DNA from: Macrostomum lignano
Taxonomy: Eukaryota
Reading direction: 5' to 3'
NCBI GenBank assembly: GCA_002269645.1
Contig: NIVC01000455.1
Span: forward strand, 310,001 to 374,000
DNA: 64,000 nucleotides
In this document: positions 3,526 through 53,440 of the stretch, one piece after another
Position numbering within the stretch: the first letter of the stretch is position 1
How the letters are laid out: every line of letters starts with the position of its first letter
Notes under the pieces: model-generated
The model's input: only the letters and a program-made list of their open reading frames with translations
Told to the model about the DNA's origin: nothing
Database searches by the model: none
Translations under genes and position numbers: made by a program

Positions 3526-3668
3526 TGGCATTACGGTAGCATCTCTTGTGTTTTATTCTCATTTCAGCACATGCTTCAGTACAAAACCATACACGCAGTT
3601 TGTGCAAATTGATAAGAGAAAAAACATCTTATGCCGTAGAGTTGATGGAGCTCGCTTTGCCTCGACAA

Positions 3669-6600
3669 TCAGATGCTGGCTCCACTCTTGTCATCCAGAG
3701 GCACTCTGGCCGCCGCATCGTTAAGCGAGGCTGAGATGTAGCGCTGCTGCTGAAGCCTCTGAACAGCAAACACTGCGACAATGGGAGTGGCGATGAGCAG
3801 AACGCAGAGGATGATGAGCAGCACACGCCAAGTGTTGCCTGCGAGTTTAAATTGAATTGGCTTAAATGAAAAAAATTACAGCCAACCTCTAAATCGGATT
3901 TTATAGCCCCACTAGCACAGGTTTTATTGCCAACACCCCACTAGCACAGATTCTATAGGCAACACCCCACTAGCACAGATTTTATTGCCAACACCCCACT
4001 AGCACAGATTTTATAGCCAACACCCCACTAGCACAGATTTTATAGCCAACACCCCACTAGCACAGATTTTATAGCCAACACCCCACTAGCACAGATTTTA
4101 TAGCCAACAACCCACTAGCACAGATTTTATAGCCAACACCCCACTAGCACAGATTCTATTGCCAACACCCCACTAGCACAGATTTTATAGCCAACACCCC
4201 ACTAGCACAGATTTTATAGCCAACACCCCACTAGCACAGATTTTATAGCCAACACCCCACTAGCACAGATTTTATAGCCAACACCCCACTAGCACAGATT
4301 TTATAGCCAACACCCCACTAGCACAGATTTTATTGCCAACACCCCACTAGCACAGATTTTATAGCCAACACCCCACTAGCACAGATTTTATAGCCAACAC
4401 CCCACTAGCACAGATTTTATTGCCAACACCCCACTAGCACAGATTTTATAGCCAACACCCCACTAGCACAGATTTTATAGCCAACACCCCACTAGCACAG
4501 ATTTTATAGCCAACACCCCACTAGCACAGATTTTATAGCCAACACCCCACTAGCACAGATTTTATTGCCAACACCCCACTAGCACAGATTTTATAGCCAA
4601 CACCCCACTAGCACAGATTTTATAGCCAACACCCCACTAGCACAGATTTTATTGCCAACACCCCACTAGCACAGATTTTATAGCCAACACCCCACTAGCA
4701 CAGATTTTATAGCCAACACCCCACTAGCACAGATTTTATAGCCAACACCCCACTAGCACAGATTCTATAGCCAACACCCAACAGCGCAGGTGTTTATCAT
4801 GATAGGAAAAAAGGAAATAGGGCATTTTTGGGCTTGCGAAATTATAAAAATACGCATGTAAAAACATGTACTAGTCGATTTGTAGGTCACCACGCAACGC
4901 GAAGCTAATTTTTCTAAATGAAGTTGCCTGCTAGCTATTGTTGTGATTTCCTATGTGAGCACGCACTCTCATTATTAGCGGTCATCTCATTAAGGGCAGG
5001 ACATTGTCAGCTAGCAATATTGGAGATTGCCACCTGAATTTGAAATTCCCTTGTCTGCTTTCCCTAATGATCAGGAAATTAAAGAAATCATTGTTTGTTT
5101 CATCGACCTCAGTAACCCAGGTGCCGCACGTCGGTTCTTGAGTGCAGAATTGCAATTCAAGTTTTTCAGAAAACATTTTTCAGCGATCGAAATTTTACTG
5201 TCTTTCTGATTTTTGCTTCCGATTTTGAATTGAAGTCGCGGAAGTTCCAAACAATGGCCTGATTGACGGGTGAAAAAAACACCTGTCTCATGGCAAAGCG
5301 ACATTGAAATTTAGCGACATTGTGACGCCATGAAATTTAGATTCTGTAATCACTTTCAATGATTAATATTGTCCACTAATTACAGTTCCCTACGGCATAA
5401 ACCGAATTCCCGATTGAACCGGGAGGGAACCGGGAGGGAACCGGGAGGGAACCGGGAGGGAACCGGGAGGGAACCGGGAGGGAACCGGGAGGGAACCGGG
5501 AGGGAACCGGGAGGGAACCGGGAGGGAACCGGGAGGGAACCGGGAGGGAACCGGGAGGGAACCGGGAGGGAACCGGGAGGGAACCGGGAGGGAACCGGGA
5601 GGGAACCGGGAGGGAACCGGGAGGGAACCGGGAGGGAACCGGGAGGGAACCGGGAGGGAACCGGGAGGGAACCGGGAGGGAACCGGGAGGGAACCGGGAG
5701 GGAACCGGGAGGGAACCGGGAGGGAACCGGGAGGGAACCGGGAGGGAACCGGGAGGGAACCGGGAGGGAACCGGGAGGGAACCGGGAGGGAACCGGGAGG
5801 GAACCGGGAGGGAACCGGGAGGGAACCGGGAGGGAACCGGGAGGGAACCGGGAGGGAACCGGGAGGGAACCGGGAGGGAACCGGGAGGGAACCGGGAGGC
5901 ATTAGGCACTAAGAAGCTCATCCATAACTGACAAACCGGAAACAGCTGTCGATGGTGTCCTATCAATTACACTTGGTTCGCTGAGGGTAGTCGTCGCCTG
6001 GTCAGGATTTGTCCCAGTCTCGCCGCCCGCAAGAGGTTGGGCACCGTGGCAGAAGCCCAGCAGCTGCAGGCAGTCCAGTTTGAATCCGCTGCTGAAAGTC
6101 GTTCGGCTCGGGCACATCTCGCAGGAGCAACCCCGGGTCAGGTAGCTGTCGGCCGGGCAGCCTCGGACCGCAGCCGTGCCGCAGGCTGCCTCGCTACCCA
6201 GGTAGGCCCTCTGGCAGGACAGCTGGTTGAGGGGGCCTGCAAATTTGAGTATTGAGTTCATCACAGGTTAGCACATCTGATGAAATCCAATCTGATTATT
6301 TGGTGGTTTCATTCCATCTGATAATCGATGATTTGTGACCTTATCGTCCCAGATGTGGTTCACGGTACCTGACTTTTCTGTCTTATCTTACCTGCATACT
6401 AAATTTGGTGTTAGGTAGTGGTGTTACCTGTAGGGTTAGCCCACCTGAAGATACGTGTTTAAAGGGCTTTAGCTGACCTGATTAATCCTTTGCAGAAGTG
6501 AAAACCAATTATCTCATACACATTTCCATACAGTGCAATTCTTGGTCAACGCTAATGACCGTAAACTGTTACCGACATCCACACGCTTGATTCAGGTAGG

Positions 6601-9600
6601 ACTTTAGCTGCATGTGGCATTATATGCTGTATCTGGTAATAGCGAATATCTTTCAGACGACTCAGACCCCGGCGGTTTGCAGACTTCGGACTCGTATTTC
6701 TTGTTCTGCTCTATTGAACTCCACAAGGATTAGTGCTCAGACACTGCTCAGACACTGCTCAGACATTTAGACCAGATATCTGAACGGCAGGAGCATAATT
6801 GGGCTAAAAATACCCGCAGATTCCTTCGCGCTGGGGAACCCACGACCGCATTTGGCATGCGACATATGCTCTCATTGTTAATGACTACTTCATGAGTCCT
6901 ATTAGCTCAAAGTGCTCTCTCGACCCAGTCGTCTCCGTGTCGAGTACCTCTTAGAGCTTGTCAGCTTGATTTCCAACCGACTGGGGCAGACGGTTTGGTT
7001 AACTCGGAAAGTTCTTGAGCTCTCACTTCTCACCTCAGTTACAATTAGATTGCACTCCCGTCCGTTTCTGTCGTTTTACTATGTGTTCATGACTATGTAC
7101 CGGTATTTATGCACCACACGCTTGGCGCTCACTTACAGCTCCTTGCAAACTTCGGAAAAATGAGTGCTACTGTAGATTATCAAAATATGTGAACTTGCTT
7201 CAAAAGTGCGACTTTCTACGAAATTTATCAATCACCCATATCAGCTGGTGTTTATGGTGCAGAACATACCGTCTCTTTGTGTCTATGGCCCAGATAAGCT
7301 ATAGTGTCTATGGCCCAGACCCATGTATTTGGCTTAGATAAGCTATAATGTCTATGGCCCAGACCCGTTGGCTTAGATAAGCTAATGTCTATGGCCAAGA
7401 CCCGTGTCTTTGGCTTAGATAAGCTATAGTACCTATGGCCCAGACCCGTTGGCTTAGATAAGCTAATCTCTATGGTCCAGACCTTTTGGGGGGCCGTAGC
7501 CCAGCGGTCTAGCGCAGGCTCTGGTGTGCCAGAGGCCCAGGCTCGATTCCAAGTGCAGTCACATTAATTTGGGGCTAAATGGGAATCTCGGCTTGGCTCT
7601 GCTCGTGCAATTAACGGCCTTGAGAGCCAACCGCCCAAGGCGCAGTGAAGTGTAAATGCCTAACGATAAAATAAAGTTAGGGCCGCTGTACACTCCTGTG
7701 TGAGTGTGTGCCTGCGTACGTATCCGCGCGCTTGTGTGCCTGCTCAGGGGAGTCGGCGGAATGGGCAGTAATGCCTCTTGCCGGTTGTGTGCCTATGTCG
7801 CTTAAAGTGCGCCAGGGTGTACACAACCCCCCTGCCTCTAAAAAAATGGTCCAGACCCGTGTCTTTGGCTTAGATAAGCTATAGTGCCTATGGCCCAGAC
7901 CCGTTGGCTTAGGTAAGCTAATGTCTATGGCCCAGACCCGTGTCTTTGGCTTAGATCAGCTGATAACTGACTCAGATTAAGTGGTCGCTATGGCACAGAT
8001 CAGCGTGCAGTCGATAAAAGTTTGCAGAGAACTATTATTTACAAGGAAACATTTACATACGGAGTGTCAAGACAGTCTAAAACTTCTTCGAAAACAATTC
8101 CGCGGTCCCTTCTACTGGAGCAGGTGCTTACAGGGCAGCTCAAATCGATAATAATAAAAGGGAGCCCTGACGTTGTCTCAAATTTTCACAAGTCAGTCAA
8201 AAGCAACAAACAAAGACCCGAATTTGCTAAAGAAATATTTTCTCGGAAATTCTCTCGTGACTGCTGTTTACCTGTAATCAAAGTCATTAACTGCGATGCA
8301 GTCGCTTATACGTTTTCGCTGGAAGTTTCGCCTCCCCACAAATTAACCTGTTTTTCAATCAGCGTTTAGCGGACAGAGCCCTCTTATTGAACTCATCTTT
8401 AATTGTGCTTTCAACACTTTCAGCTCAATCAATAGCACTACTGAGACAAAATAACAGCCTTCGCTGCATCACCTTTACCCTGTAGGTTGTGTATAGAGCA
8501 CCTGTAAGAAATGTGGGTCCCCGTGTCTGTCTCGGTTTGAGCAGCGTTCGTTCCACCTTTCCACTACTTCGTAAGTAAATTTCGAACACTTTCTGCCTTG
8601 CTCAAATTTTATTATTGAGATAGACCTCATGATGCAGCTAAATTACTCTTTTTATCGAAGCGCTGACCCACTCCTCTCCTGACCCACTCTCTCCTGACCC
8701 ACTCCTCTCCTGACCCACTGTCTCCTGACCCACTCTCTCCTGACCCACTCTTTCCTGACCCACTCTCTCCTGACCCACTCCTCTCCTGACCCACTCCTCT
8801 CCTGACCCACTCCTCTCCTGACCCACTCCTCTCCTGACCCACTCTTTCCTGACCCCCTCCTCTCCTGACCCACTCTCTCCTGACCCACTCTCTCCTGACC
8901 CCCTCCTCTCCTGACCCACTCTCTCCTGACCCCCTCCTCTCCTGACCCACTCTCTCCTGACCCACTCTCTCCTGACCCCCTCCTCTCCTGACCCACTCTC
9001 TCCTGACCCACTCCTCTCCTGACCCACTCCTCTCCTGACCCACTCCTCGATCCTGACCCACTCTCTCCTGACCCACTCCTCTCCTGACCCACTCCTCTCC
9101 TGACCCACTCTCTCCTGACCCCTCCTCTCCTGACCCACTCCTCTCCTGACCCACTCTCTCCTGACCCACTCTCTCCTGACCCACTCCTCTCCTGACCCAC
9201 TCTTTCCTGACCCACTCTCTCCTGACCCACTCTCTCCTGACCCACTCCTCTCCTGACCCACTCCTCGATCCTGACCCACTCTCTCCTGACCCACTCCTCT
9301 CCTGACCCACTCCTCGATCCTGACCCACTCTCTCCTGACCCACTCCTCTCCTGACCCACTCCTCGATCCTGACCCACTCCTCTCCTGACCGATTTCCATT
9401 CCGAAGTCAAACTCACTCGCAGTTGTGACCTCGGGCGGCTCGCACAGACCTAAGAGGCTGATGCAGCGCAGCCTGACTCTCTGGACCGGATGGCTGGGCC
9501 TCTCGCCGGCTTGCGGACACCTGTGACAGGTGCAGTCAATGCCGCGATACTCCAGGCCCTTTTGACAGGCGCTGTGGCTGCTGCGGCTGCACCGGTCGCC

Positions 9601-9683
9601 ACGAGACAGGCCCATGACCTCACGGCAGAGTTTGAGTTCGTTCAGGCCTTGCGAGTTGCCGGATGACTGGTTGACTGCAGCTC
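3669..9683 (-). CDS. 5'-partial gene for a single-pass membrane protein with two 8-Cys modules, a Ser/Thr stalk, a TM helix and a short tail
   Basis: Three phase-compatible exons with AG/GT borders: 9683-9417, 6236-5937 and 3838-3669 (stop TGA). Both introns are phase 1 and codons are GC3-biased. TM segment: [29 protein letters not shown] on the minus strand at 3557-3552. The signal-peptide exon was not located. Confidence 0.75.
3903..4783. repeat. 29-bp minisatellite, ~30 copies (intronic)
   Basis: Unit CCAACACCCCACTAGCACAGATTTTATAG. Confidence 0.95.
5417..5899. repeat. Perfect 12-bp G-rich minisatellite, ~40 copies (intronic)
   Basis: Unit AACCGGGAGGGA, with no visible variants. Confidence 0.97.
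7295..7960. repeat. Degenerate minisatellite (TATGGCCCAGACCCGT...GGCTTAGATAAGC) interrupted by a SINE
   Basis: Recurring unit on both sides of the SINE at 7484-7845. Confidence 0.85.
7484..7845 (+). mobile_element. tRNA-derived SINE, family B, full length with A-tail and target-site duplication
   Basis: Head GGGGCCGTAGCCCAGCGGT...GGCTCGATTCC and A-rich tail. TSD ATGGTCCAGACC at 7472-7483 and 7846-7857. Homologous to 12614-12976. Confidence 0.9.
8663..9390. repeat. Pyrimidine-rich 15/17-bp composite minisatellite (CCTGACCCACTC(CT)CTCT)
   Basis: Tandem units starting ~25 nt from the splice donor at 9416 and filling part of that intron. Confidence 0.93.
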
Positions 9684-9899
9684 CTGCGAATTCGATTATT
9701 ATAGGTTTTATTGCTAATAAATTCGAACTTCGAAGGTGCTGATTTTTATATTTTATGTTAATATTTATCAGAAGCAAACGCAAACTGATTAATACAGTAA
9801 AAAAAATAAATTCAGAAAGTTAGGGAATGAAGAATATTTCTCGAAGTGACTCGAGATAAAATCTCGTGCGCTAGCAGATTATTCAAGCTTTTTTCTGCA

Positions 9900-10340
9900 T
9901 CCTAGCTAGCGTCATGTATTTGAAGAGTTTTGCTAGAACTTTCATTGTTTATCCATCTTCTTGAGTCATTAGGTAAACTTTTTATCCTCTGCAGTGAGGT
10001 TTTAAGTTCAAATTTATCGCGGGGAGCACTATAAAAGTTCCAGCTGCACTTGAACAGGAAGTGAACTTCACTTTCTACCCCACATGGCACTTTGGACAGG
10101 CCCTGTTCTCGTAAGGGATCTTTATGTCTTGTAGTCCTCACTGTTTCACATCACAGTTTATGGTTTGCTAATCTAAACTGTGACAGGTAGGTAGGGTGCG
10201 CTGAATTCTGGATTGGACATTTCTAGGGCGGAATTTTCTGTTGAGTACAATGAGTAGTACCATTTGAAGCTGCAGTGACTTTGCTCTGCAGAGTTCTCCA
10301 CTCTCTGTTTCCAGTGTCTCTAAAATCTGTTATAATTCAA
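9900..10340 (-). mobile_element. Degraded 3' end of a non-LTR retrotransposon (C-terminal Cys/His region)
   Basis: PCGVESEVHFLFKCSWNFYSAPR resembles the C-x-E-x-E-x-HFL-x-x-C motif at the end of LINE ORF2. Confidence 0.4.
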
Positions 10341-10606
10341 AACCAGTTTTGTGTGTTCTGATTGACTTTCTACTCGTCCATGGTGACAGTTTCGTGTGAT
10401 TTCGTTATTCACTTCAGCTGAAATGCCAGCCTTACTGTAAAATGGATTCCCGACTAGCCTCGAGGGATGATGGAGTCTGGGGCGATTTGCTATAGTAAGG
10501 CCCGGTACTGCATAATTATCTTTCAGATATTGTATGACAAGGGCAGTCTGCCTAGCTCAGAGCGGGCTCCATTACTGTCAGTATTTTGGCTAACTTTGCT
10601 CTTTCA

Positions 10607-11520
10607 GTAGTCTGCCGCCCTACCCAATACTCACCCGGTAGTCTGCCGCCCTACCCAATACTCACCCGGTAGTCTGCTGCCCTACCCAATACTCACCCGG
10701 TAGTCTGCCGCCCTACCCAATACTCACCCAGTAGTCTGCCACTTTACCCAATACTCACCCGGTAGTCTGCCACTTTACCCAATACTCACCCAGTAGTCTG
10801 CCGCCCTACCCAATACTCACCCAGTACTGCCACTTTACCCAATACTCACCCAGTAGTCTGCCGCCCTACCCAATACTCACCCAGTAGTCTACCGCCCTAC
10901 CCAATACTCACCCAGTAGTCTACCGCCCTACCCAATACTCACCCGGTAGTCTGCTGCCCTACCCAATACTCACCCAGTAGTCTACCGCCCTACCCAATAC
11001 TCACCCAGTAGTCTACCGCCCTACCCAATACTCACCCGGTAGTCTGCCGCCCTACCCAATACTCACCCGGTAGTCTGCCGCCCTACCCAATACTCACCCG
11101 GTAGTCTGCCGCCCTACCCAATACTCACCCGGTAGTCTGCCGCCCTACCCAATACTCACCCGGTAGAGTCGTAGCCCTACCCAATACTCACCCGGTAGTC
11201 CATAGCCCTACCCAATACTCACCCGGTAGTCCGTAGCCCTACCCAATACTCACCCGGTAGTCCGTAGCCCTACCCAATACTCACCCGGTAGTCCGTAGCC
11301 CTACCCAATACTCACCCGGTAGTCCGTAGCCCTACCCAATACTCACCCGGTAGTCCGTAGCCCTACCCAATACTCACCCGGTAGTCCGTAGCCCTACCTA
11401 ATACTCACCCGGTAGTCCGTAGCCCTACCCAATACTCACCCGGTAGTCCGTAGCCCTACCCAATACTCACCCGGTAGTCCGTAGCCCTATCCAATACTCA
11501 CCCGGTAGTCCGTAGCCCTA
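10607..11520. repeat. 31-bp minisatellite, ~29 copies, with two variant domains
   Basis: Unit TACCCAATACTCACCCGGTAGTCTGCCGCCC, switching to ...GTCCGTAGCCC after ~11165. Confidence 0.95.
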
Positions 11521-12613
11521 CCATCGCATCGATAACATCTGCGATTCTTTTACCTTCGCATTCGCACTGTACGTAATTACGAGTAGTTTACCACCTCTAG
11601 GTCTTATCTGTTCAGCCGGTGTTTCTGTTCTTTCCTACACGGGCCCGCATCGCGTGTGATTTTCACGCAGCCTCTTTTGCATCCGTGAGTTTATGGCGTC
11701 CCACAGATCAAAGGAAGGAGGGGTAGAACCCCCCCCCCCGGTGTGTTTGGAACTCGCCATCGCGGGGCGTTCGTTTGATGCCGCCGCCGCGCCGCTTTCA
11801 TGCCAGTGCCGGCTACCTGACAATAAGCGATAACTCGAAGCCAATTTACAGGCCAATTATAACTTACCTAGGAGGAGGCACAGTTCAATCAGGGCAGCGG
11901 CCTGATTGCGCCAATTCATTTGGATATGCAGATAAAAACTGGTCACACTGCCAATGTCAATTAGGCCTGTTGCTAATCAGTGCAGATTCGATAGCAATGT
12001 GAGATAAAGGCACAGGATCGGCCAACATGGAACTAACGTCTAAAATATCCATTACTCGTAGCTATATCAGATGCGATGTGTACATTACCCCACTTTGCTA
12101 CTGTGTATAGTGTGGTGTACACTGGAGCCAATTCAATTTATGAGCTATAATTAAACGCGCAATTGCATTCAAGAAAAAACTTCTTGAGAGAGAGAGAAGG
12201 GTGGCTATGGATATGTAGTGAAGCGTGTAGGTTCTATTTTTAAAACAGTTCTCTGGCAGCATAGCTGCTTCAAGATCTAAGTAAACTCAGCAACAGTCAC
12301 AAGTGCCACCTGCACGCGCGTAGCACGCAACGAACTGAAGGAGGAGGGATTGACAGTCAATCACAATAAATCCTAACAGTTTATTTAGTTAGCTTGTATT
12401 AACTAATATGAAGTGTGCATACATTTTTAAAGCAATCTTGACTGTGAAATGCAAGTGCTAAAAGTATATATACAATGGTATATTGTTCTGAAGTAGGGAT
12501 GCTCAGAAACTCGGGCCGGCTCCTCCTTTAACAGGCGCTCGCATGTTATACCACTACATCCCGACTGCAGATGAGTGCATTGACTTCCCTATAGGCTAGT
12601 AGTCTATGGTCTA

Positions 12614-15087: not shown

Positions 15088-24473
<9,386 letters not shown>

Positions 24474-24689
24474 GGGGGCTGACTGACGGAGAATCGTGTC
24501 GATGGGATCTGGGATCTGTGCCGCTGCGGGCGCATTTAAACTCCCAGAGTTGGGCGACACGGTCAGGCGCCCCGAGATTTGATTGGCCCACACCGCTCAT
24601 TGGGGGGGCGTTCGAGACGAGCAACTGGAAGATCTGGGAAGACAAACTGGGGAGGGGGGCAAAGGACTGTCGAGCTTGTGGATACGACC

Positions 24690-26790
24690 GCAAGCCTTTC
24701 AAATCTCCTGGACCTGATGGTATCTACCCTGTTCTTCTTCGCGAAGCAGCCAAGATACCCACGTTCCTGAGACTTACCCGAAATCTCATGCGGGCCTCTA
24801 TCCAGCTGGGATACGTTCCCAAGTGCTGGGCCGAAGCTCGGATAGTCTTCATTCCCAAACCTGGGAATGGTGACTACCAGAGCGTGAAGGCCTTTGGGCA
24901 AATTAGCTTAACATCAGCAATGCTTAAGCTCACTGAGAGGCTTATTCTCTGGCGTCTGCTGTCCTGCGAGCTGACAGTGATGCCCCTCAGCAATAATCAG
25001 CACGTCTTCCGTACCGGGAGGTCGACTGACAGCGCTCTGCATGCGATAGTCGAGAAGATTGAACGGGCGGTACTGGGTGACGGTTACGCCCTGGCTCTCT
25101 TTCTTGACATTGTTGGCGCCTTCGACAACGTTATCTTTGAAGCGTTTCAGAGGGCCCTTCAAAATCACAAAGCTCATGCTACCCTCATACGGTGGATCAT
25201 GTACATGATCTCTAACTGTACGGTCACTGCCCAACTCCTAGGGCAAACTGCCTCCTCCAGAGTCTGTAAGGGTGGACCCCAAGGTGGAGTCCTCACCCCG
25301 ACGCTCTGGAACCTGGTCATGGACGCTCTTCTGAGTGACTCCCGACCTGATCCCGTCTTCAAAGTCGGGTTTGCTGACGACGTCACGGCCATTGTCGCAA
25401 GGCCGTCTCCCAGCATGCACAAGAATCTGATGCAGAGTTTTATCCGCAAAGCAGAATCCTGGGCCAATGACAACGGTCTGGAACCCTCTGAGCCCAAAAA
25501 CTGTTGCCATTATGTTCACCAGCAGAATACGCTGGAACATTCGACCTCTGCAGCTCTACGGCAGAGATATTGCCTTCGCGCACCAGACCAGATGTCTCGG
25601 GGTCATGCTAGACCACCGGCTCAACTGGTCCTTCCACGTGAAAGCAAAAGCCAAGCGTGCCTCAGCCATCCTGGCCCAGCTCCGACGAGCATTTGGCACT
25701 TCTTGGGGTCTATCGCCTAAGTGGCTTTGGTGGATCTACACTTCCGTAGTTAGACCTGCCATTACATACGCCTCTGTTGTCTGGGTTAGCGCTACGCAGT
25801 TCAAAAGCCATGCAGATTTGCTCAACATGATCCAGGGCAGAGCGTGTAGGCTCATCTGCAACGCCACCAGGTCCACGCCCTTTGTCGGCATGGGGGCCTT
25901 CCTTAATCTACCGCCTCTCGACCTCTTCGTCAGGAGGGTGAGGCGGCTAGAACGACCTGGCGTTTACTTGATGCCAGTGTCAAATTCCTATACATGAGAG
26001 CACCTGCTAAGCGGAACCTTGTCCCGCATAGCGATCTGTGCCTCAACATTCTCAACGAGTGTCAGGCCAATCGCATCTTCACCGATGGCATTGCCTCAAC
26101 GCTCAACCTGAGACAACGCTACTCCGTAGCTATCGACTCGCGCGATAACATCAATGACCGATGGAACCCTGGTGAGCTTCATTGCTACACCGACGGTTCT
26201 AAGCAGTCAGCCAACACCGGTTTTGGTGTTGGAATCTTCCTGAACGGGAGGGTCATCGCAACCCACGCTCAGTACACTGGGGTCAACTCCAGTGTTTTCC
26301 AAAATGAAGTTCTCGCCATCAGCTCCTGCATTGCAGAGCTTCTCGCCACTGGCGTTACTGGTAAGAACATCATTTTCCATTCGGACAGCCAAGCTGCCTT
26401 GCACGCCATCAGTGGCTGCAGCACCAATTCTGATACAGTCCTCGACTGTATCAAACTCCTCAACAGGTTGGGCTCCACCAACAAAATCACCCTTAAGTGG
26501 ATTCCGGGACATGTGGGGATCCGAGGGAATGAGTTGGCTGACGCCCTTGCAAAAGTTGGCGCCTCCGGCTCCTCTCTCGGGCCTGAACCCATTGTCCCTA
26601 TCCCCGGCTGCGTCATCGACTCGCGCATCAAAGCGTGGATCAGGATTCAGCACCGCTTGACTTGGGCGAACTGCACTACCTGCAGGCAATCCAGAGGCGC
26701 TGTCCCTCAGCCCTCTCACCAGCTCCGGAAGCTCCTCTTGCGCCTCTCGCGTAGAGACATCCGGGCTGCCACCATAACCCTCTCAGGGTC
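24690..26790 (+). mobile_element. Degraded non-LTR retrotransposon with RT and RNase H (LOA/R1/I-like), truncated at both ends
   Basis: RT motifs KSPGPDGIYP, ARIVFIPKPG, QHVFRTGRST, FLDIVGAFDNV, GPQGGVLTPTLW, FADD. RNase H motifs YTDGSK, SVFQNEVLAI, SDSQAAL, WIPGHVGIRGNELAD. Frameshifts near 25490 and ~25950; no endonuclease domain or 3' tail visible. Confidence 0.92.
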
Positions 26791-26869
26791 AAGTAAGTCA
26801 AGTTGCGGATACGACGGTGAGTTTTGGGGATAACAGCAAGGCACAATCATGTGCGCTCCTGGCGCCAGA

Positions 26870-26960
26870 GGTGACTGAGTCAAATGTGCCACTTTGTGGG
26901 TCAAATGCGCCACTTTTTGAGTTAGATGCGCCACTTTTTTAGTTAGATGCGCCACTTTGT
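26870..26960. repeat. 21-bp tandem repeat, ~4 copies
   Basis: Unit GT(C/T)A(A/G)ATGCGCCACTTTTTGA. Confidence 0.75.
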
Positions 26961-27699
26961 GACTTTGGAATATCAGTAGCCTGCTTTATCAAAGAGTTGG
27001 CACTATTTTTAGGAAAACGAGAACAAGAAGAGGTTAGATGCTCTCACACCTTTCTTTGGTTTCCCATTGCGTTTTCAGGTCCTTTGGACAACTGATTGCG
27101 ATTGGCGGGGGCTGCTTGTTGTCAAGGGGGGCTAATTTAGGCTCACAAGAGATTAGCTGAGATTAGACTCCGGAGCCGCAGCTGAGAAAGAAGCTTTCGA
27201 AACTGCAAAATTTATACGATCAAGCAAAGCATATAAGGTAATAAAAATATTGGGACAAAATGAAATGGGGTCATCAAAGAAAGGTTGGAGTGGATTAACT
27301 CATAGATTTAAGCCCGTTGCGCTGAGCAAGAAAAAAGAAAACAGGGCCCCTTGTGCGTCACTGAACTGCGCATCACGGCTCATCACTACCGGCATCTTCT
27401 CTCGCCCGGAGATAGTTGTTTGCTTGTAAATGCGTGTATTCACTGGAATTTTCGGACCCCACCCTGTCCTCACCCCAGCCTCCCCCTCATTATCAAATAA
27501 TTGTCAGTGTCACTTCCAGTTCCGCCTCGGCTGGGCCGGTGAGCCTCGGGAGCCGGAGGGGGCTGCATCAACGACTTGATGGGCGTGAAGAGGCCAGGAA
27601 TAATCCTGCCCTGATATGAGGGCTTCTTAATTGATGGACAGTCTCGAGTAGATTGATGCGGGCGACTTCAGAGGGAATGGGGAAGTGTCATGGGAGTGA

Positions 27700-51370: not shown

Positions 51371-51377
51371 GCATCTG

Positions 51378-51432
<55 letters not shown>

Positions 51433-51523
51433 GTCTATCTATCTATCTGTCTATCTATCTGTCTATCTATCTATTTATCTATCTATCTATCTGTCTATCT
51501 ATCTATCTGTCTATCTATCTATT

Positions 51524-51554
<31 letters not shown>

Positions 51555-51569
51555 CTGTCTATCTATCTG

Positions 51570-51624
<55 letters not shown>

Positions 51625-51671
51625 GTCTATCTATCTATCTGTCTATCTATCTATCTGTCTATCTATCTATT

Positions 51672-51716
<45 letters not shown>

Positions 51717-51729
51717 GTCTATCTATCTG

Positions 51730-51768
<39 letters not shown>

Positions 51769-51817
51769 GTCTATCTATCTATTTATCTATCTATCTATCT
51801 GTCTATCTATCTATCTG

Positions 51818-51868
<51 letters not shown>

Positions 51869-51881
51869 GTCTATCTATCTG

Positions 51882-51920
<39 letters not shown>

Positions 51921-52001
51921 GTCTATCTATCTATTTATCTATCTATCTATCTGTCTATCTATCTATCTGTCTATCTATCTATTTATCTATCTATCTATCT
52001 G

Positions 52002-52040
<39 letters not shown>

Positions 52041-52057
52041 GTCTATCTATCTATCTG

Positions 52058-52092
<35 letters not shown>

Positions 52093-52093
52093 G

Positions 52094-52124
<31 letters not shown>

Positions 52125-52161
52125 GTCTATCTATCTATCTGTCTATCTATCTATCTATCTG

Positions 52162-52288
<127 letters not shown>

Positions 52289-52337
52289 GTCTATCTATCT
52301 ATTTATCTATCTATCTATCTGTCTATCTATCTATCTG

Positions 52338-52440
<103 letters not shown>

Positions 52441-52691
52441 GTCTATCTATCTATCTGTCTATCTATCTATTTATCTATCTATCTATCTGTCTATCTATCT
52501 ATCTGTCTATCTATCTATTTATCTATCTATCTATCTGTCTATCTATCTATCTATCTGTCTATCTATCTATCTGTCTATCTATCTATCTGTCTATCTATCT
52601 ATTTATCTATCTATCTATCTGTCTATCTATCTATCTGTCTATCTATCTATTTATCTATCTATCTATCTGTCTATCTATCTATCTATCTGTC

Positions 52692-52722
<31 letters not shown>

Positions 52723-52773
52723 CTATCTATCTGTCTATCTATCTATCTATCTGTCTATATATCTATCTATCTG

Positions 52774-52944
<171 letters not shown>

Positions 52945-52991
52945 GTCTATCTATCTATCTGTCTATCTAACTATCTGTCTATCTATCTATT

Positions 52992-53036
<45 letters not shown>

Positions 53037-53049
53037 GTCTATCTATCTG

Positions 53050-53128
<79 letters not shown>

Positions 53129-53177
53129 GTCTATCTATCTATTTATCTATCTATCTATCTGTCTATCTATCTATCTG

Positions 53178-53232
<55 letters not shown>

Positions 53233-53309
53233 GTCTATCTATCTGTCTATCTATCTGTCTATCTATCTATTTATCTATCTATCTATCTGTCTATCTATCT
53301 ATCTATCTG

Positions 53310-53440
<131 letters not shown>

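Follow-up and report, generated by a model that had tools for sequence, protein, structure and literature searches.

The 64,000-nt stretch of the Macrostomum lignano genome analysed here (assembly GCA_002269645.1, contig NIVC01000455.1, positions 310,001 to 374,000 of the forward strand; called the window below) contains a real, already deposited and unstudied gene, BOX15_Mlig018243g1, which encodes a small cell-surface protein. The evidence supports a type I membrane protein composed of a signal peptide, two duplicated cysteine-rich modules, a stalk, a transmembrane (TM) helix and a short tail. Each module has eight cysteines, and its skeleton is similar to that of the cysteine-rich domains (CRDs) of the tumour necrosis factor receptor (TNFR) family, although membership of that family is unproven. 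The favoured reading, to which slightly less than an even chance is given, is that the two modules are TNFR-like but highly diverged, and that the protein is a type I receptor, decoy or co-receptor restricted to its lineage. A new cysteine-rich domain is nearly as likely. The protein can thus be regarded as an unusual eight-cysteine, short-tailed variant at the edge of the TNFR kind, or possibly as a lineage-specific new domain. A first-pass annotation of the window had described an uncharacterised surface protein built from a repeated eight-cysteine module; its observation is confirmed, and its interpretation is partly supported.

The gene model is well defined. When the minus-strand exons 9683..9417, 6236..5937 and 3838..3669 (window positions, as throughout) are joined and translated, a single open frame of 244 aa is obtained. 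The splice acceptors read ...TTCGCAG/G, ...TTTGCAG/G and ...CTCGCAG/G, with the slash at the junction, and the donors between exons 2–4 read /GTGAGT and /GTTTGT. Over its full length, the spliced product shows 100% identity to PAA82741.1 / UniRef100_A0A1I8HF80, which was the sole match among 5.8 billion proteins. PAA82741.1 is a 262-aa “hypothetical protein BOX15_Mlig018243g1” of M. lignano, placed by GenBank at NIVC01000455.1 313669-321919 on the reverse strand. It carries 18 extra N-terminal residues, MNWRNQAAALIELCLLLG, beyond the three-exon product. By matching this N-terminus to the six-frame translation of the window, the signal-peptide exon that had previously been missing could be placed at 11919..11868 on the minus strand. 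The coding part of this exon (11868..11919) starts with the ATG at 11919..11917 and comprises 17 codons and one base, namely MNWRNQAAALIELCLLL and the first base of G18; it ends in phase 1 at a GTAAGT donor.

Exons 2, 3 and 4 are each entered in phase 1, and exons 2 (9417..9683, 267 nt) and 3 (5937..6236, 300 nt) are therefore symmetric 1-1 exons. The earlier statement that each module occupies its own symmetric phase 1-1 exon is borne out by both the translation and the splice phases. The GenBank annotation of the assembly was built from a genome-guided RNA-seq transcriptome (StringTie/TACO and de novo assembly; PMC5730564), so the predicted junctions 9417/6236 and 5937/3838, which agree with it, are backed at the level of a transcript-derived model. 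The coding part of exon 4 (3669..3838, minus strand) ends with a TGA stop at 3671..3669. Approximately 115 nt past the stop, an AATAAA hexamer can be read on the minus strand (3557..3552), and it is likely to be the polyadenylation signal of the gene. As had been remarked, the gene is hidden in the track of open reading frames (ORFs): exon 2 is buried in a 381-aa ORF (8638..9783, minus strand) that runs into a 16-bp minisatellite, and the other long ORFs near the gene are repeat ORFs.

The order of features along the protein is that of a type I membrane protein. Exon 2 encodes the mature N-terminus, with the only N-glycosylation sequon of the protein (N22), followed by module 1 (C37..C98, 9627..9442). 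Exon 3 encodes module 2 (C114..C169, 6216..6049) and a Ser/Thr/Pro-rich stalk, in which 38% of residues 170-208 are S, T or P. The most hydrophobic 19-mer lies at residues 212-230 (Kyte-Doolittle 3.18) and is followed by QRLQQQR; this places the TM helix around residues 210-231 (3830..3765, in exon 4). A cytoplasmic tail of 31 aa with a single Tyr completes the protein. The Thr/Ser-rich stalk, TM helix and short one-Tyr tail of the first-pass annotation are thus all seen in the sequence, with the tail length set at 31 aa. The positive-inside residues and the hydrophobic N-terminus fit a type I topology.

In the full protein, the cysteines are found at positions 37, 49, 57, 68, 70, 73, 91 and 98 and at positions 114, 125, 133, 143, 145, 148, 162 and 169. 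These positions exactly reproduce the spacings given previously, C-x11-C-x7-C-x10-C-x-C-x2-CP-x16-C-ISLLGL-C for module 1 and C-x10-C-x7-C-x9-C-x-C-x2-CP-x12-C-LQLLGF-C for module 2. The modules are approximately 29% identical to each other, and all 16 module cysteines are kept. Their mutual alignment score was reached by 5 of 3000 full shuffles and by 106 of 3000 shuffles in which the cysteines were fixed. This above-chance likeness, as judged from the two sequences, fits an internal exon duplication. Neither CxCxxCP nor LLGxC occurs elsewhere in the six frames of the window; therefore, only two modules are present there, and the idea of further modules elsewhere in the window was rejected.

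The resemblance to TNFR CRDs resides in the last six cysteines of each module, which follow the pattern C-x9/10-C-x-C-x2-C-x13/17-C-x6-C. The successive gaps are 10, 1, 2, 17 and 6 in module 1 and 9, 1, 2, 13 and 6 in module 2. In 20 CRDs from five flatworm TNFRs (PMC7519573 supplement), the corresponding gaps are 10-17, 0-2, 2(3), 9-12 and 7(13). A Tyr stands 5-6 residues after the first cysteine of the six-cysteine skeleton (CQKGLEY, CPADSY), and its TNFR counterparts are CPAGFW and CEKPYY. In addition, the CxxCP turn of the modules resembles the CxxC(P/K)PG of flatworm TNFR CRDs. Through C1-C4 of the last six cysteines and the aromatic residue, the modules follow the TNFR A1-B2 skeleton; they depart from it in a longer C4-C5 loop and in a C5-C6 loop that is one residue short. 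The earlier judgement that the spacing does not match a TNFR CRD was therefore too strong. The type I architecture, with N-terminal modules, a stalk and a TM helix, is likewise typical of the TNFR family.

The protein already carries an annotation in UniRef, which names UniRef100_A0A1I8HF80 a “TNFR-Cys domain-containing protein”. This is an automatic label with no study behind it. Presumably, it stems from an automatic match to a PROSITE PS50050-type profile. The related pattern PS00652, C-x(4,6)-[FYH]-x(5,10)-C-x(0,2)-C-x(2,3)-C-x(7,11)-C-x(4,6)-[DNEQSKP]-x2-C, matches both modules (residues 57-98 and 133-169) when relaxed to allow a C4-C5 gap of up to 18 and a C5-C6 gap of 4-7.

There are a number of observations that weigh against a TNFR assignment. 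In its strict form, PS00652 does not match either module, because the C4-C5 gaps are 13 and 17 against an allowed 7-11 and the C5-C6 gap of 6 falls short of 7-9. Where TNFR CRDs have a polar ..DT.C loop between C5 and C6, the modules have a hydrophobic one (ISLLGL, LQLLGF). Each module has an additional N-terminal cysteine pair and thus eight cysteines instead of six. Pfam TNFR_c6 (PF00020) gave no match at E<=10 to the whole protein or to either module. A flatworm CRD profile scored the modules at 3.0 and 3.9 bits, values equalled by 32% and 17% of shuffles with fixed cysteines; a broader profile scored them at 2.1 and 3.9 bits, equalled by 44% and 17% of such shuffles. An hhalign comparison with the CRD profile returned probabilities of 2% (local) and 0.08% (global). 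The tail lacks [PSAT]x[QE]E, PxQxxD and PxExx[Ar/Ac] motifs and a Pfam Death match. Finally, BOX15_Mlig018243g1 is absent from the tables and sequences of the 2020 platyhelminth survey, which covers 31 TNFRs (PMC7519573).

The gathering score of PF00020 is 29.4 bits, and the canonical M. lignano TNFR ectodomain, used as a positive control, scored 51.4 bits with this model. As PF00020 reportedly fails to detect Grindelwald, a genuine receptor with one CRD (bioRxiv 10.1101/2024.07.27.603686), its failure here is weak evidence against TNFR membership. The flatworm profile was built from 16 CRDs (sequences from the PMC7519573 supplement) and was validated by 67 PDB matches at E<=0.01; all of the matches listed are TNFR-superfamily receptors or TNFR-like proteins. 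The broader profile combined 28 human and flatworm CRDs; the human sequences (TNFR1, TNFR2, CD40, DR5 and Fas) were verified ungapped against PDB chains. The alignment of the CRD profile to the modules covers the C1-C4 half only. Because only two module sequences are available, the profile tests have little power. A deep alignment could not be built, as there are no homologues to fill it. MAFFT misregistered the second and third cysteines when applied to the full modules, and its alignment was kept out of AlphaFold. Run without an alignment, AlphaFold2 reached a confidence (pLDDT) of 50.2 on the whole protein and of 45.7 on module 2, so the models are unusable and speak neither for nor against TNFR membership. 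Foldseek found no match in the PDB to the low-confidence module 2 model. As a side observation, the manually corrected M. lignano TNFR ectodomain (PMC7519573 supplement) found no match, not even itself, at E<=0.001 in a word-indexed search of the 5.8 billion proteins; evidently, either the deposited model departs from the corrected form, or the match was lost in the word filter. A word-indexed search with the CRD alignment gave one match.

The same evidence can be read as the signature of a new extracellular domain that arose and was duplicated in the Macrostomum lineage. The unit C-x10/11-C-x7-C-x9/10-C-x-C-x2-CP-x12/16-C-x2-LLG-x-C would then resemble TNFR CRDs only through a coincidental CxCxxC-type skeleton, the “TNFR-Cys” label would be a false positive, and the gene would encode a receptor or adhesion molecule specific to Macrostomum. 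This reading is nearly as probable as the favoured one. No confident match to a known Pfam domain appeared: searched at E<=10, the protein and its modules brought up no relevant family. In the PDB, neither the protein nor a module profile gave a true sequence match. Consistent with the first-pass annotation, the modules are not EGF, TIL, antistasin or Ly6 domains as far as profiles can tell: neither module had a Pfam-A match at E<=10 to EGF, laminin-EGF, TIL, antistasin, Ly6/uPAR, furin-like or ephrin-receptor-like families. TNFR profiles that score the modules no better than fixed-cysteine shuffles, together with the negative hhalign result, also speak for a new domain, as do the eight cysteines per unit. 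The conserved non-cysteine residues (CP and L-x-C-x2-LLG-x-C) are not TNFR signatures. Nevertheless, the modules agree with TNFR CRDs in the C1-C4 half of the skeleton and in the placing of the aromatic residue, the type I architecture agrees as well, and the automatic name already groups the protein with TNFR-Cys domains. TNFR CRDs are known to diverge past the reach of Pfam (bioRxiv 10.1101/2024.07.27.603686), and profile tests that rely on two module sequences have little power. Two database listings were set aside as spurious. The sole Pfam listing for the whole protein, Imm58 (E=0.078), reached 13.5 bits against a cut-off of 25 and lies over the TM helix and tail; a histidine phosphotransfer protein was listed in the PDB search at E ~0.7.

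The taxonomic spread of the gene is narrow. When 1.84 billion representative proteins were scanned exhaustively with phmmer (threshold E<=0.001), no homologue was found outside M. lignano, so at the sensitivity of phmmer BOX15_Mlig018243g1 is taxonomically restricted; this absence of relatives also favours a new domain. Four proteins passed the threshold, including PAA82741.1 itself. P0002 is a 690-aa model of a rhodopsin-type G-protein-coupled receptor (GPCR) whose end is module 1, at 96% identity. P0003 is a 95-aa copy of the module-1 exon with several reading-frame switches, a mosaic of all three frames of window 9403-9682. P0004 was rejected as a relative, because its spurious match is confined to the TM region.

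A rhodopsin-family GPCR gene also lies in the window, at ~15091-27608 on the minus strand, approximately 3 kb upstream of BOX15_Mlig018243g1 and on the same strand. Residues 1-604 of P0002 correspond to this gene, with 68-97% identity per matched segment, and Pfam 7tm_1 scores 99.6 bits on P0002. Since P0002 matches both the GPCR of the window and module 1, P0002 and P0003 are models from another copy of the locus pair. The M. lignano assembly is known as redundant (PMC5730564). Both models probably derive from an indel-prone earlier assembly, and P0003 is probably not a true pseudogene. P0002 joins the GPCR straight to the module-1 exon acceptor (9683) in another frame. This join may represent read-through or a polycistronic unit, or it may be a mis-model; polycistronic transcription has been reported in M. 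lignano for ~7% of assembled transcripts.

These copies bear on a third explanation, namely that the locus is transcribed but has no protein function. It could be a young, drifting or pseudogenising ORF, or read-through of the upstream GPCR gene, with a cysteine pattern that plays no role. The lack of relatives beyond the species agrees with this, and the only other copies seen are the GPCR-module-1 fusion model P0002 and the frameshifted P0003. The gene identifier BOX15_Mlig018243g1 was also found neither in any indexed paper text nor in the supplementary gene lists of two M. lignano expression papers. However, the frame stays intact through all four exons, whose splice sites are canonical and whose phases agree, and the signal peptide, TM helix and positive-inside features are all present. 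The retention of 16 module cysteines in repeats that are only ~29% identical would be hard to achieve without selection, and the defects of P0002 and P0003 probably reflect the earlier assembly. A locus without protein function is thus quite improbable.

The locus is best explained as an expressed, Macrostomum-restricted gene for a 262-aa type I membrane glycoprotein, with a stalk that is probably O-glycosylated. Under the favoured reading of diverged TNFR-like modules, each module would consist of an extra cysteine pair followed by a strongly diverged TNFR-type CRD in the A1-B2 arrangement (C-x9/10-C, then C-x2-C...C-x6-C). The TNFR A1-B2 CRD has an elongated ladder fold with disulfides 1-2, 3-5 and 4-6. 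TNFR-type pairing would predict the disulfides C57-C68, C70-C91 and C73-C98 in module 1 and C133-C143, C145-C162 and C148-C169 in module 2. The ectodomain may then have the shape of a stiff, elongated ladder of disulfides and bind a protein ligand outside the cell, and the most plausible candidate would be one of the several TNF/Eiger-like ligands of M. lignano. A scan of the tail found no TRAF2, TRAF6, YxxPhi, dileucine, ITIM or PDZ motif. With a tail that has no death domain and no TRAF, YxxPhi or PDZ motif, the protein would be expected either to serve as a decoy or co-receptor or to signal via a partner.

The introns of the gene, all on the minus strand, carry repeats, and each of them holds one or more long minisatellites. 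Intron 1 (9684..11867) includes a 31-bp x 30 minisatellite (10607-11522). In intron 2 (6237..9416), a 16-bp x 46 minisatellite (8663-9390) is accompanied by 37-81-bp repeats and a tRNA-like stretch. Intron 3 (3839..5936) contains an 11-bp x 44 array (5416-5899) and a 29-bp x 30 array (3907-4779). The copies of the 11-bp array are 100% identical, which suggests a very recent expansion or a collapse in the assembly. Tandem repeats make up ~15% of the M. lignano genome (PMC5730564), and introns with minisatellites are therefore ordinary for the species. The tRNA-like stretch of intron 2 lies at ~7485-7560 on the plus strand (GGGGGGCCGTAGCCCAGCGGTCTAGCGC...GGCTCGATTCCAAG), with the 37-81-bp repeats on its flanks. 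By its letters, it looks like a tRNA gene in decay or the head of a short interspersed nuclear element; neither ARAGORN nor Rfam (gathering threshold) reported anything on the locus, including this stretch. Two further repeats were seen in the window: a 161-bp x 4.7 array at 2234-2988, downstream of the gene, and a 12.6-kb (ATCT)n microsatellite at 51373-64000, which has ~82% matches, ~27% GC and an extreme strand skew and extends past the window end.

M. lignano is a regeneration model that is amenable to transgenesis and RNA interference. It is unusual among flatworms in possessing several endogenous TNF/Eiger-like ligands. If BOX15_Mlig018243g1 is TNFR-like, it would be a candidate for an additional receptor, decoy or co-receptor in the M. 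lignano TNF system, possibly missed by published screens. The modules may even define a second class of TNF receptor in flatworms, one that has diverged extremely, and this, if true, would contradict the published view of one TNFR per platyhelminth (PMC7519573). If the protein is not related to TNFRs, it would be an example of a lineage-restricted disulfide-rich domain built by duplicating a phase 1-1 exon. Either way, the gene is of local significance: it is a single orphan gene and opens no long-standing question.

Three groups of known systems can be compared with the protein. The small TNFR-like disulfide modules in the cysteine-rich regions of EGFR and the insulin receptor, and the furin-like and ephrin-receptor-like repeats, are short modules with a C-x2-C core that form rods by stacking and often occur as repeats in the coding sequence. 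The M. lignano modules differ from this group in their spacing outside the CxxC core, and the Pfam models Furin-like, Ephrin_rec_like/GCC2_GCC3 and laminin-EGF do not match the protein or its modules at E<=10.

The second group comprises the canonical platyhelminth TNFRs. According to the platyhelminth survey, each species has one NGFR-like TNFR, which carries a death domain and four CRDs; the M. lignano member is BOX15_Mlig018038g1, and the TNF ligands of M. lignano are represented by 10 sequences (PMC7519573). For the M. lignano proteome, a later preprint based on iterated hidden Markov models counts 6 Eiger, 16 Wengen (Wgn)-like and 1 Grindelwald-like proteins (bioRxiv 10.1101/2024.07.27.603686). 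BOX15_Mlig018243g1 shares with BOX15_Mlig018038g1 and the Schistosoma mansoni SmTNFR (PMC7519573) the phylum or species, the type I form and the CxxG/DxY...C-x(0-2)-C-x2-C start of the repeat. The canonical receptors have four regular six-cysteine CRDs, a clear Pfam score (the 51.4 bits of the M. lignano control) and a death domain, whereas BOX15_Mlig018243g1 has two eight-cysteine modules, no Pfam match and a 31-aa tail.

The third group consists of those TNFR-superfamily receptors that are small, short-tailed and equipped with one or two CRDs, namely BCMA, TACI and Fn14 of vertebrates and Grindelwald and Wengen of Drosophila. The M. lignano modules differ from these receptors in their eight cysteines, a C2-C3 gap of 1, a C4-C5 gap of 13-17 and a C5-C6 loop of 6 residues that is hydrophobic (LLG). 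The protein also differs from them in a tail without a TRAF-binding motif and in the absence of detectable sequence similarity to any TNFR. Nevertheless, all of them follow one overall plan, in which one or two disulfide-rich modules at the N-terminus of a type I protein are joined by a stalk to a single TM helix, and the short tail lacks a death domain. The CRDs of the small receptors are often too diverged for PF00020, which gives no match to the modules described here either, and both have the C-x(9-10)-C / C-x2-C core.

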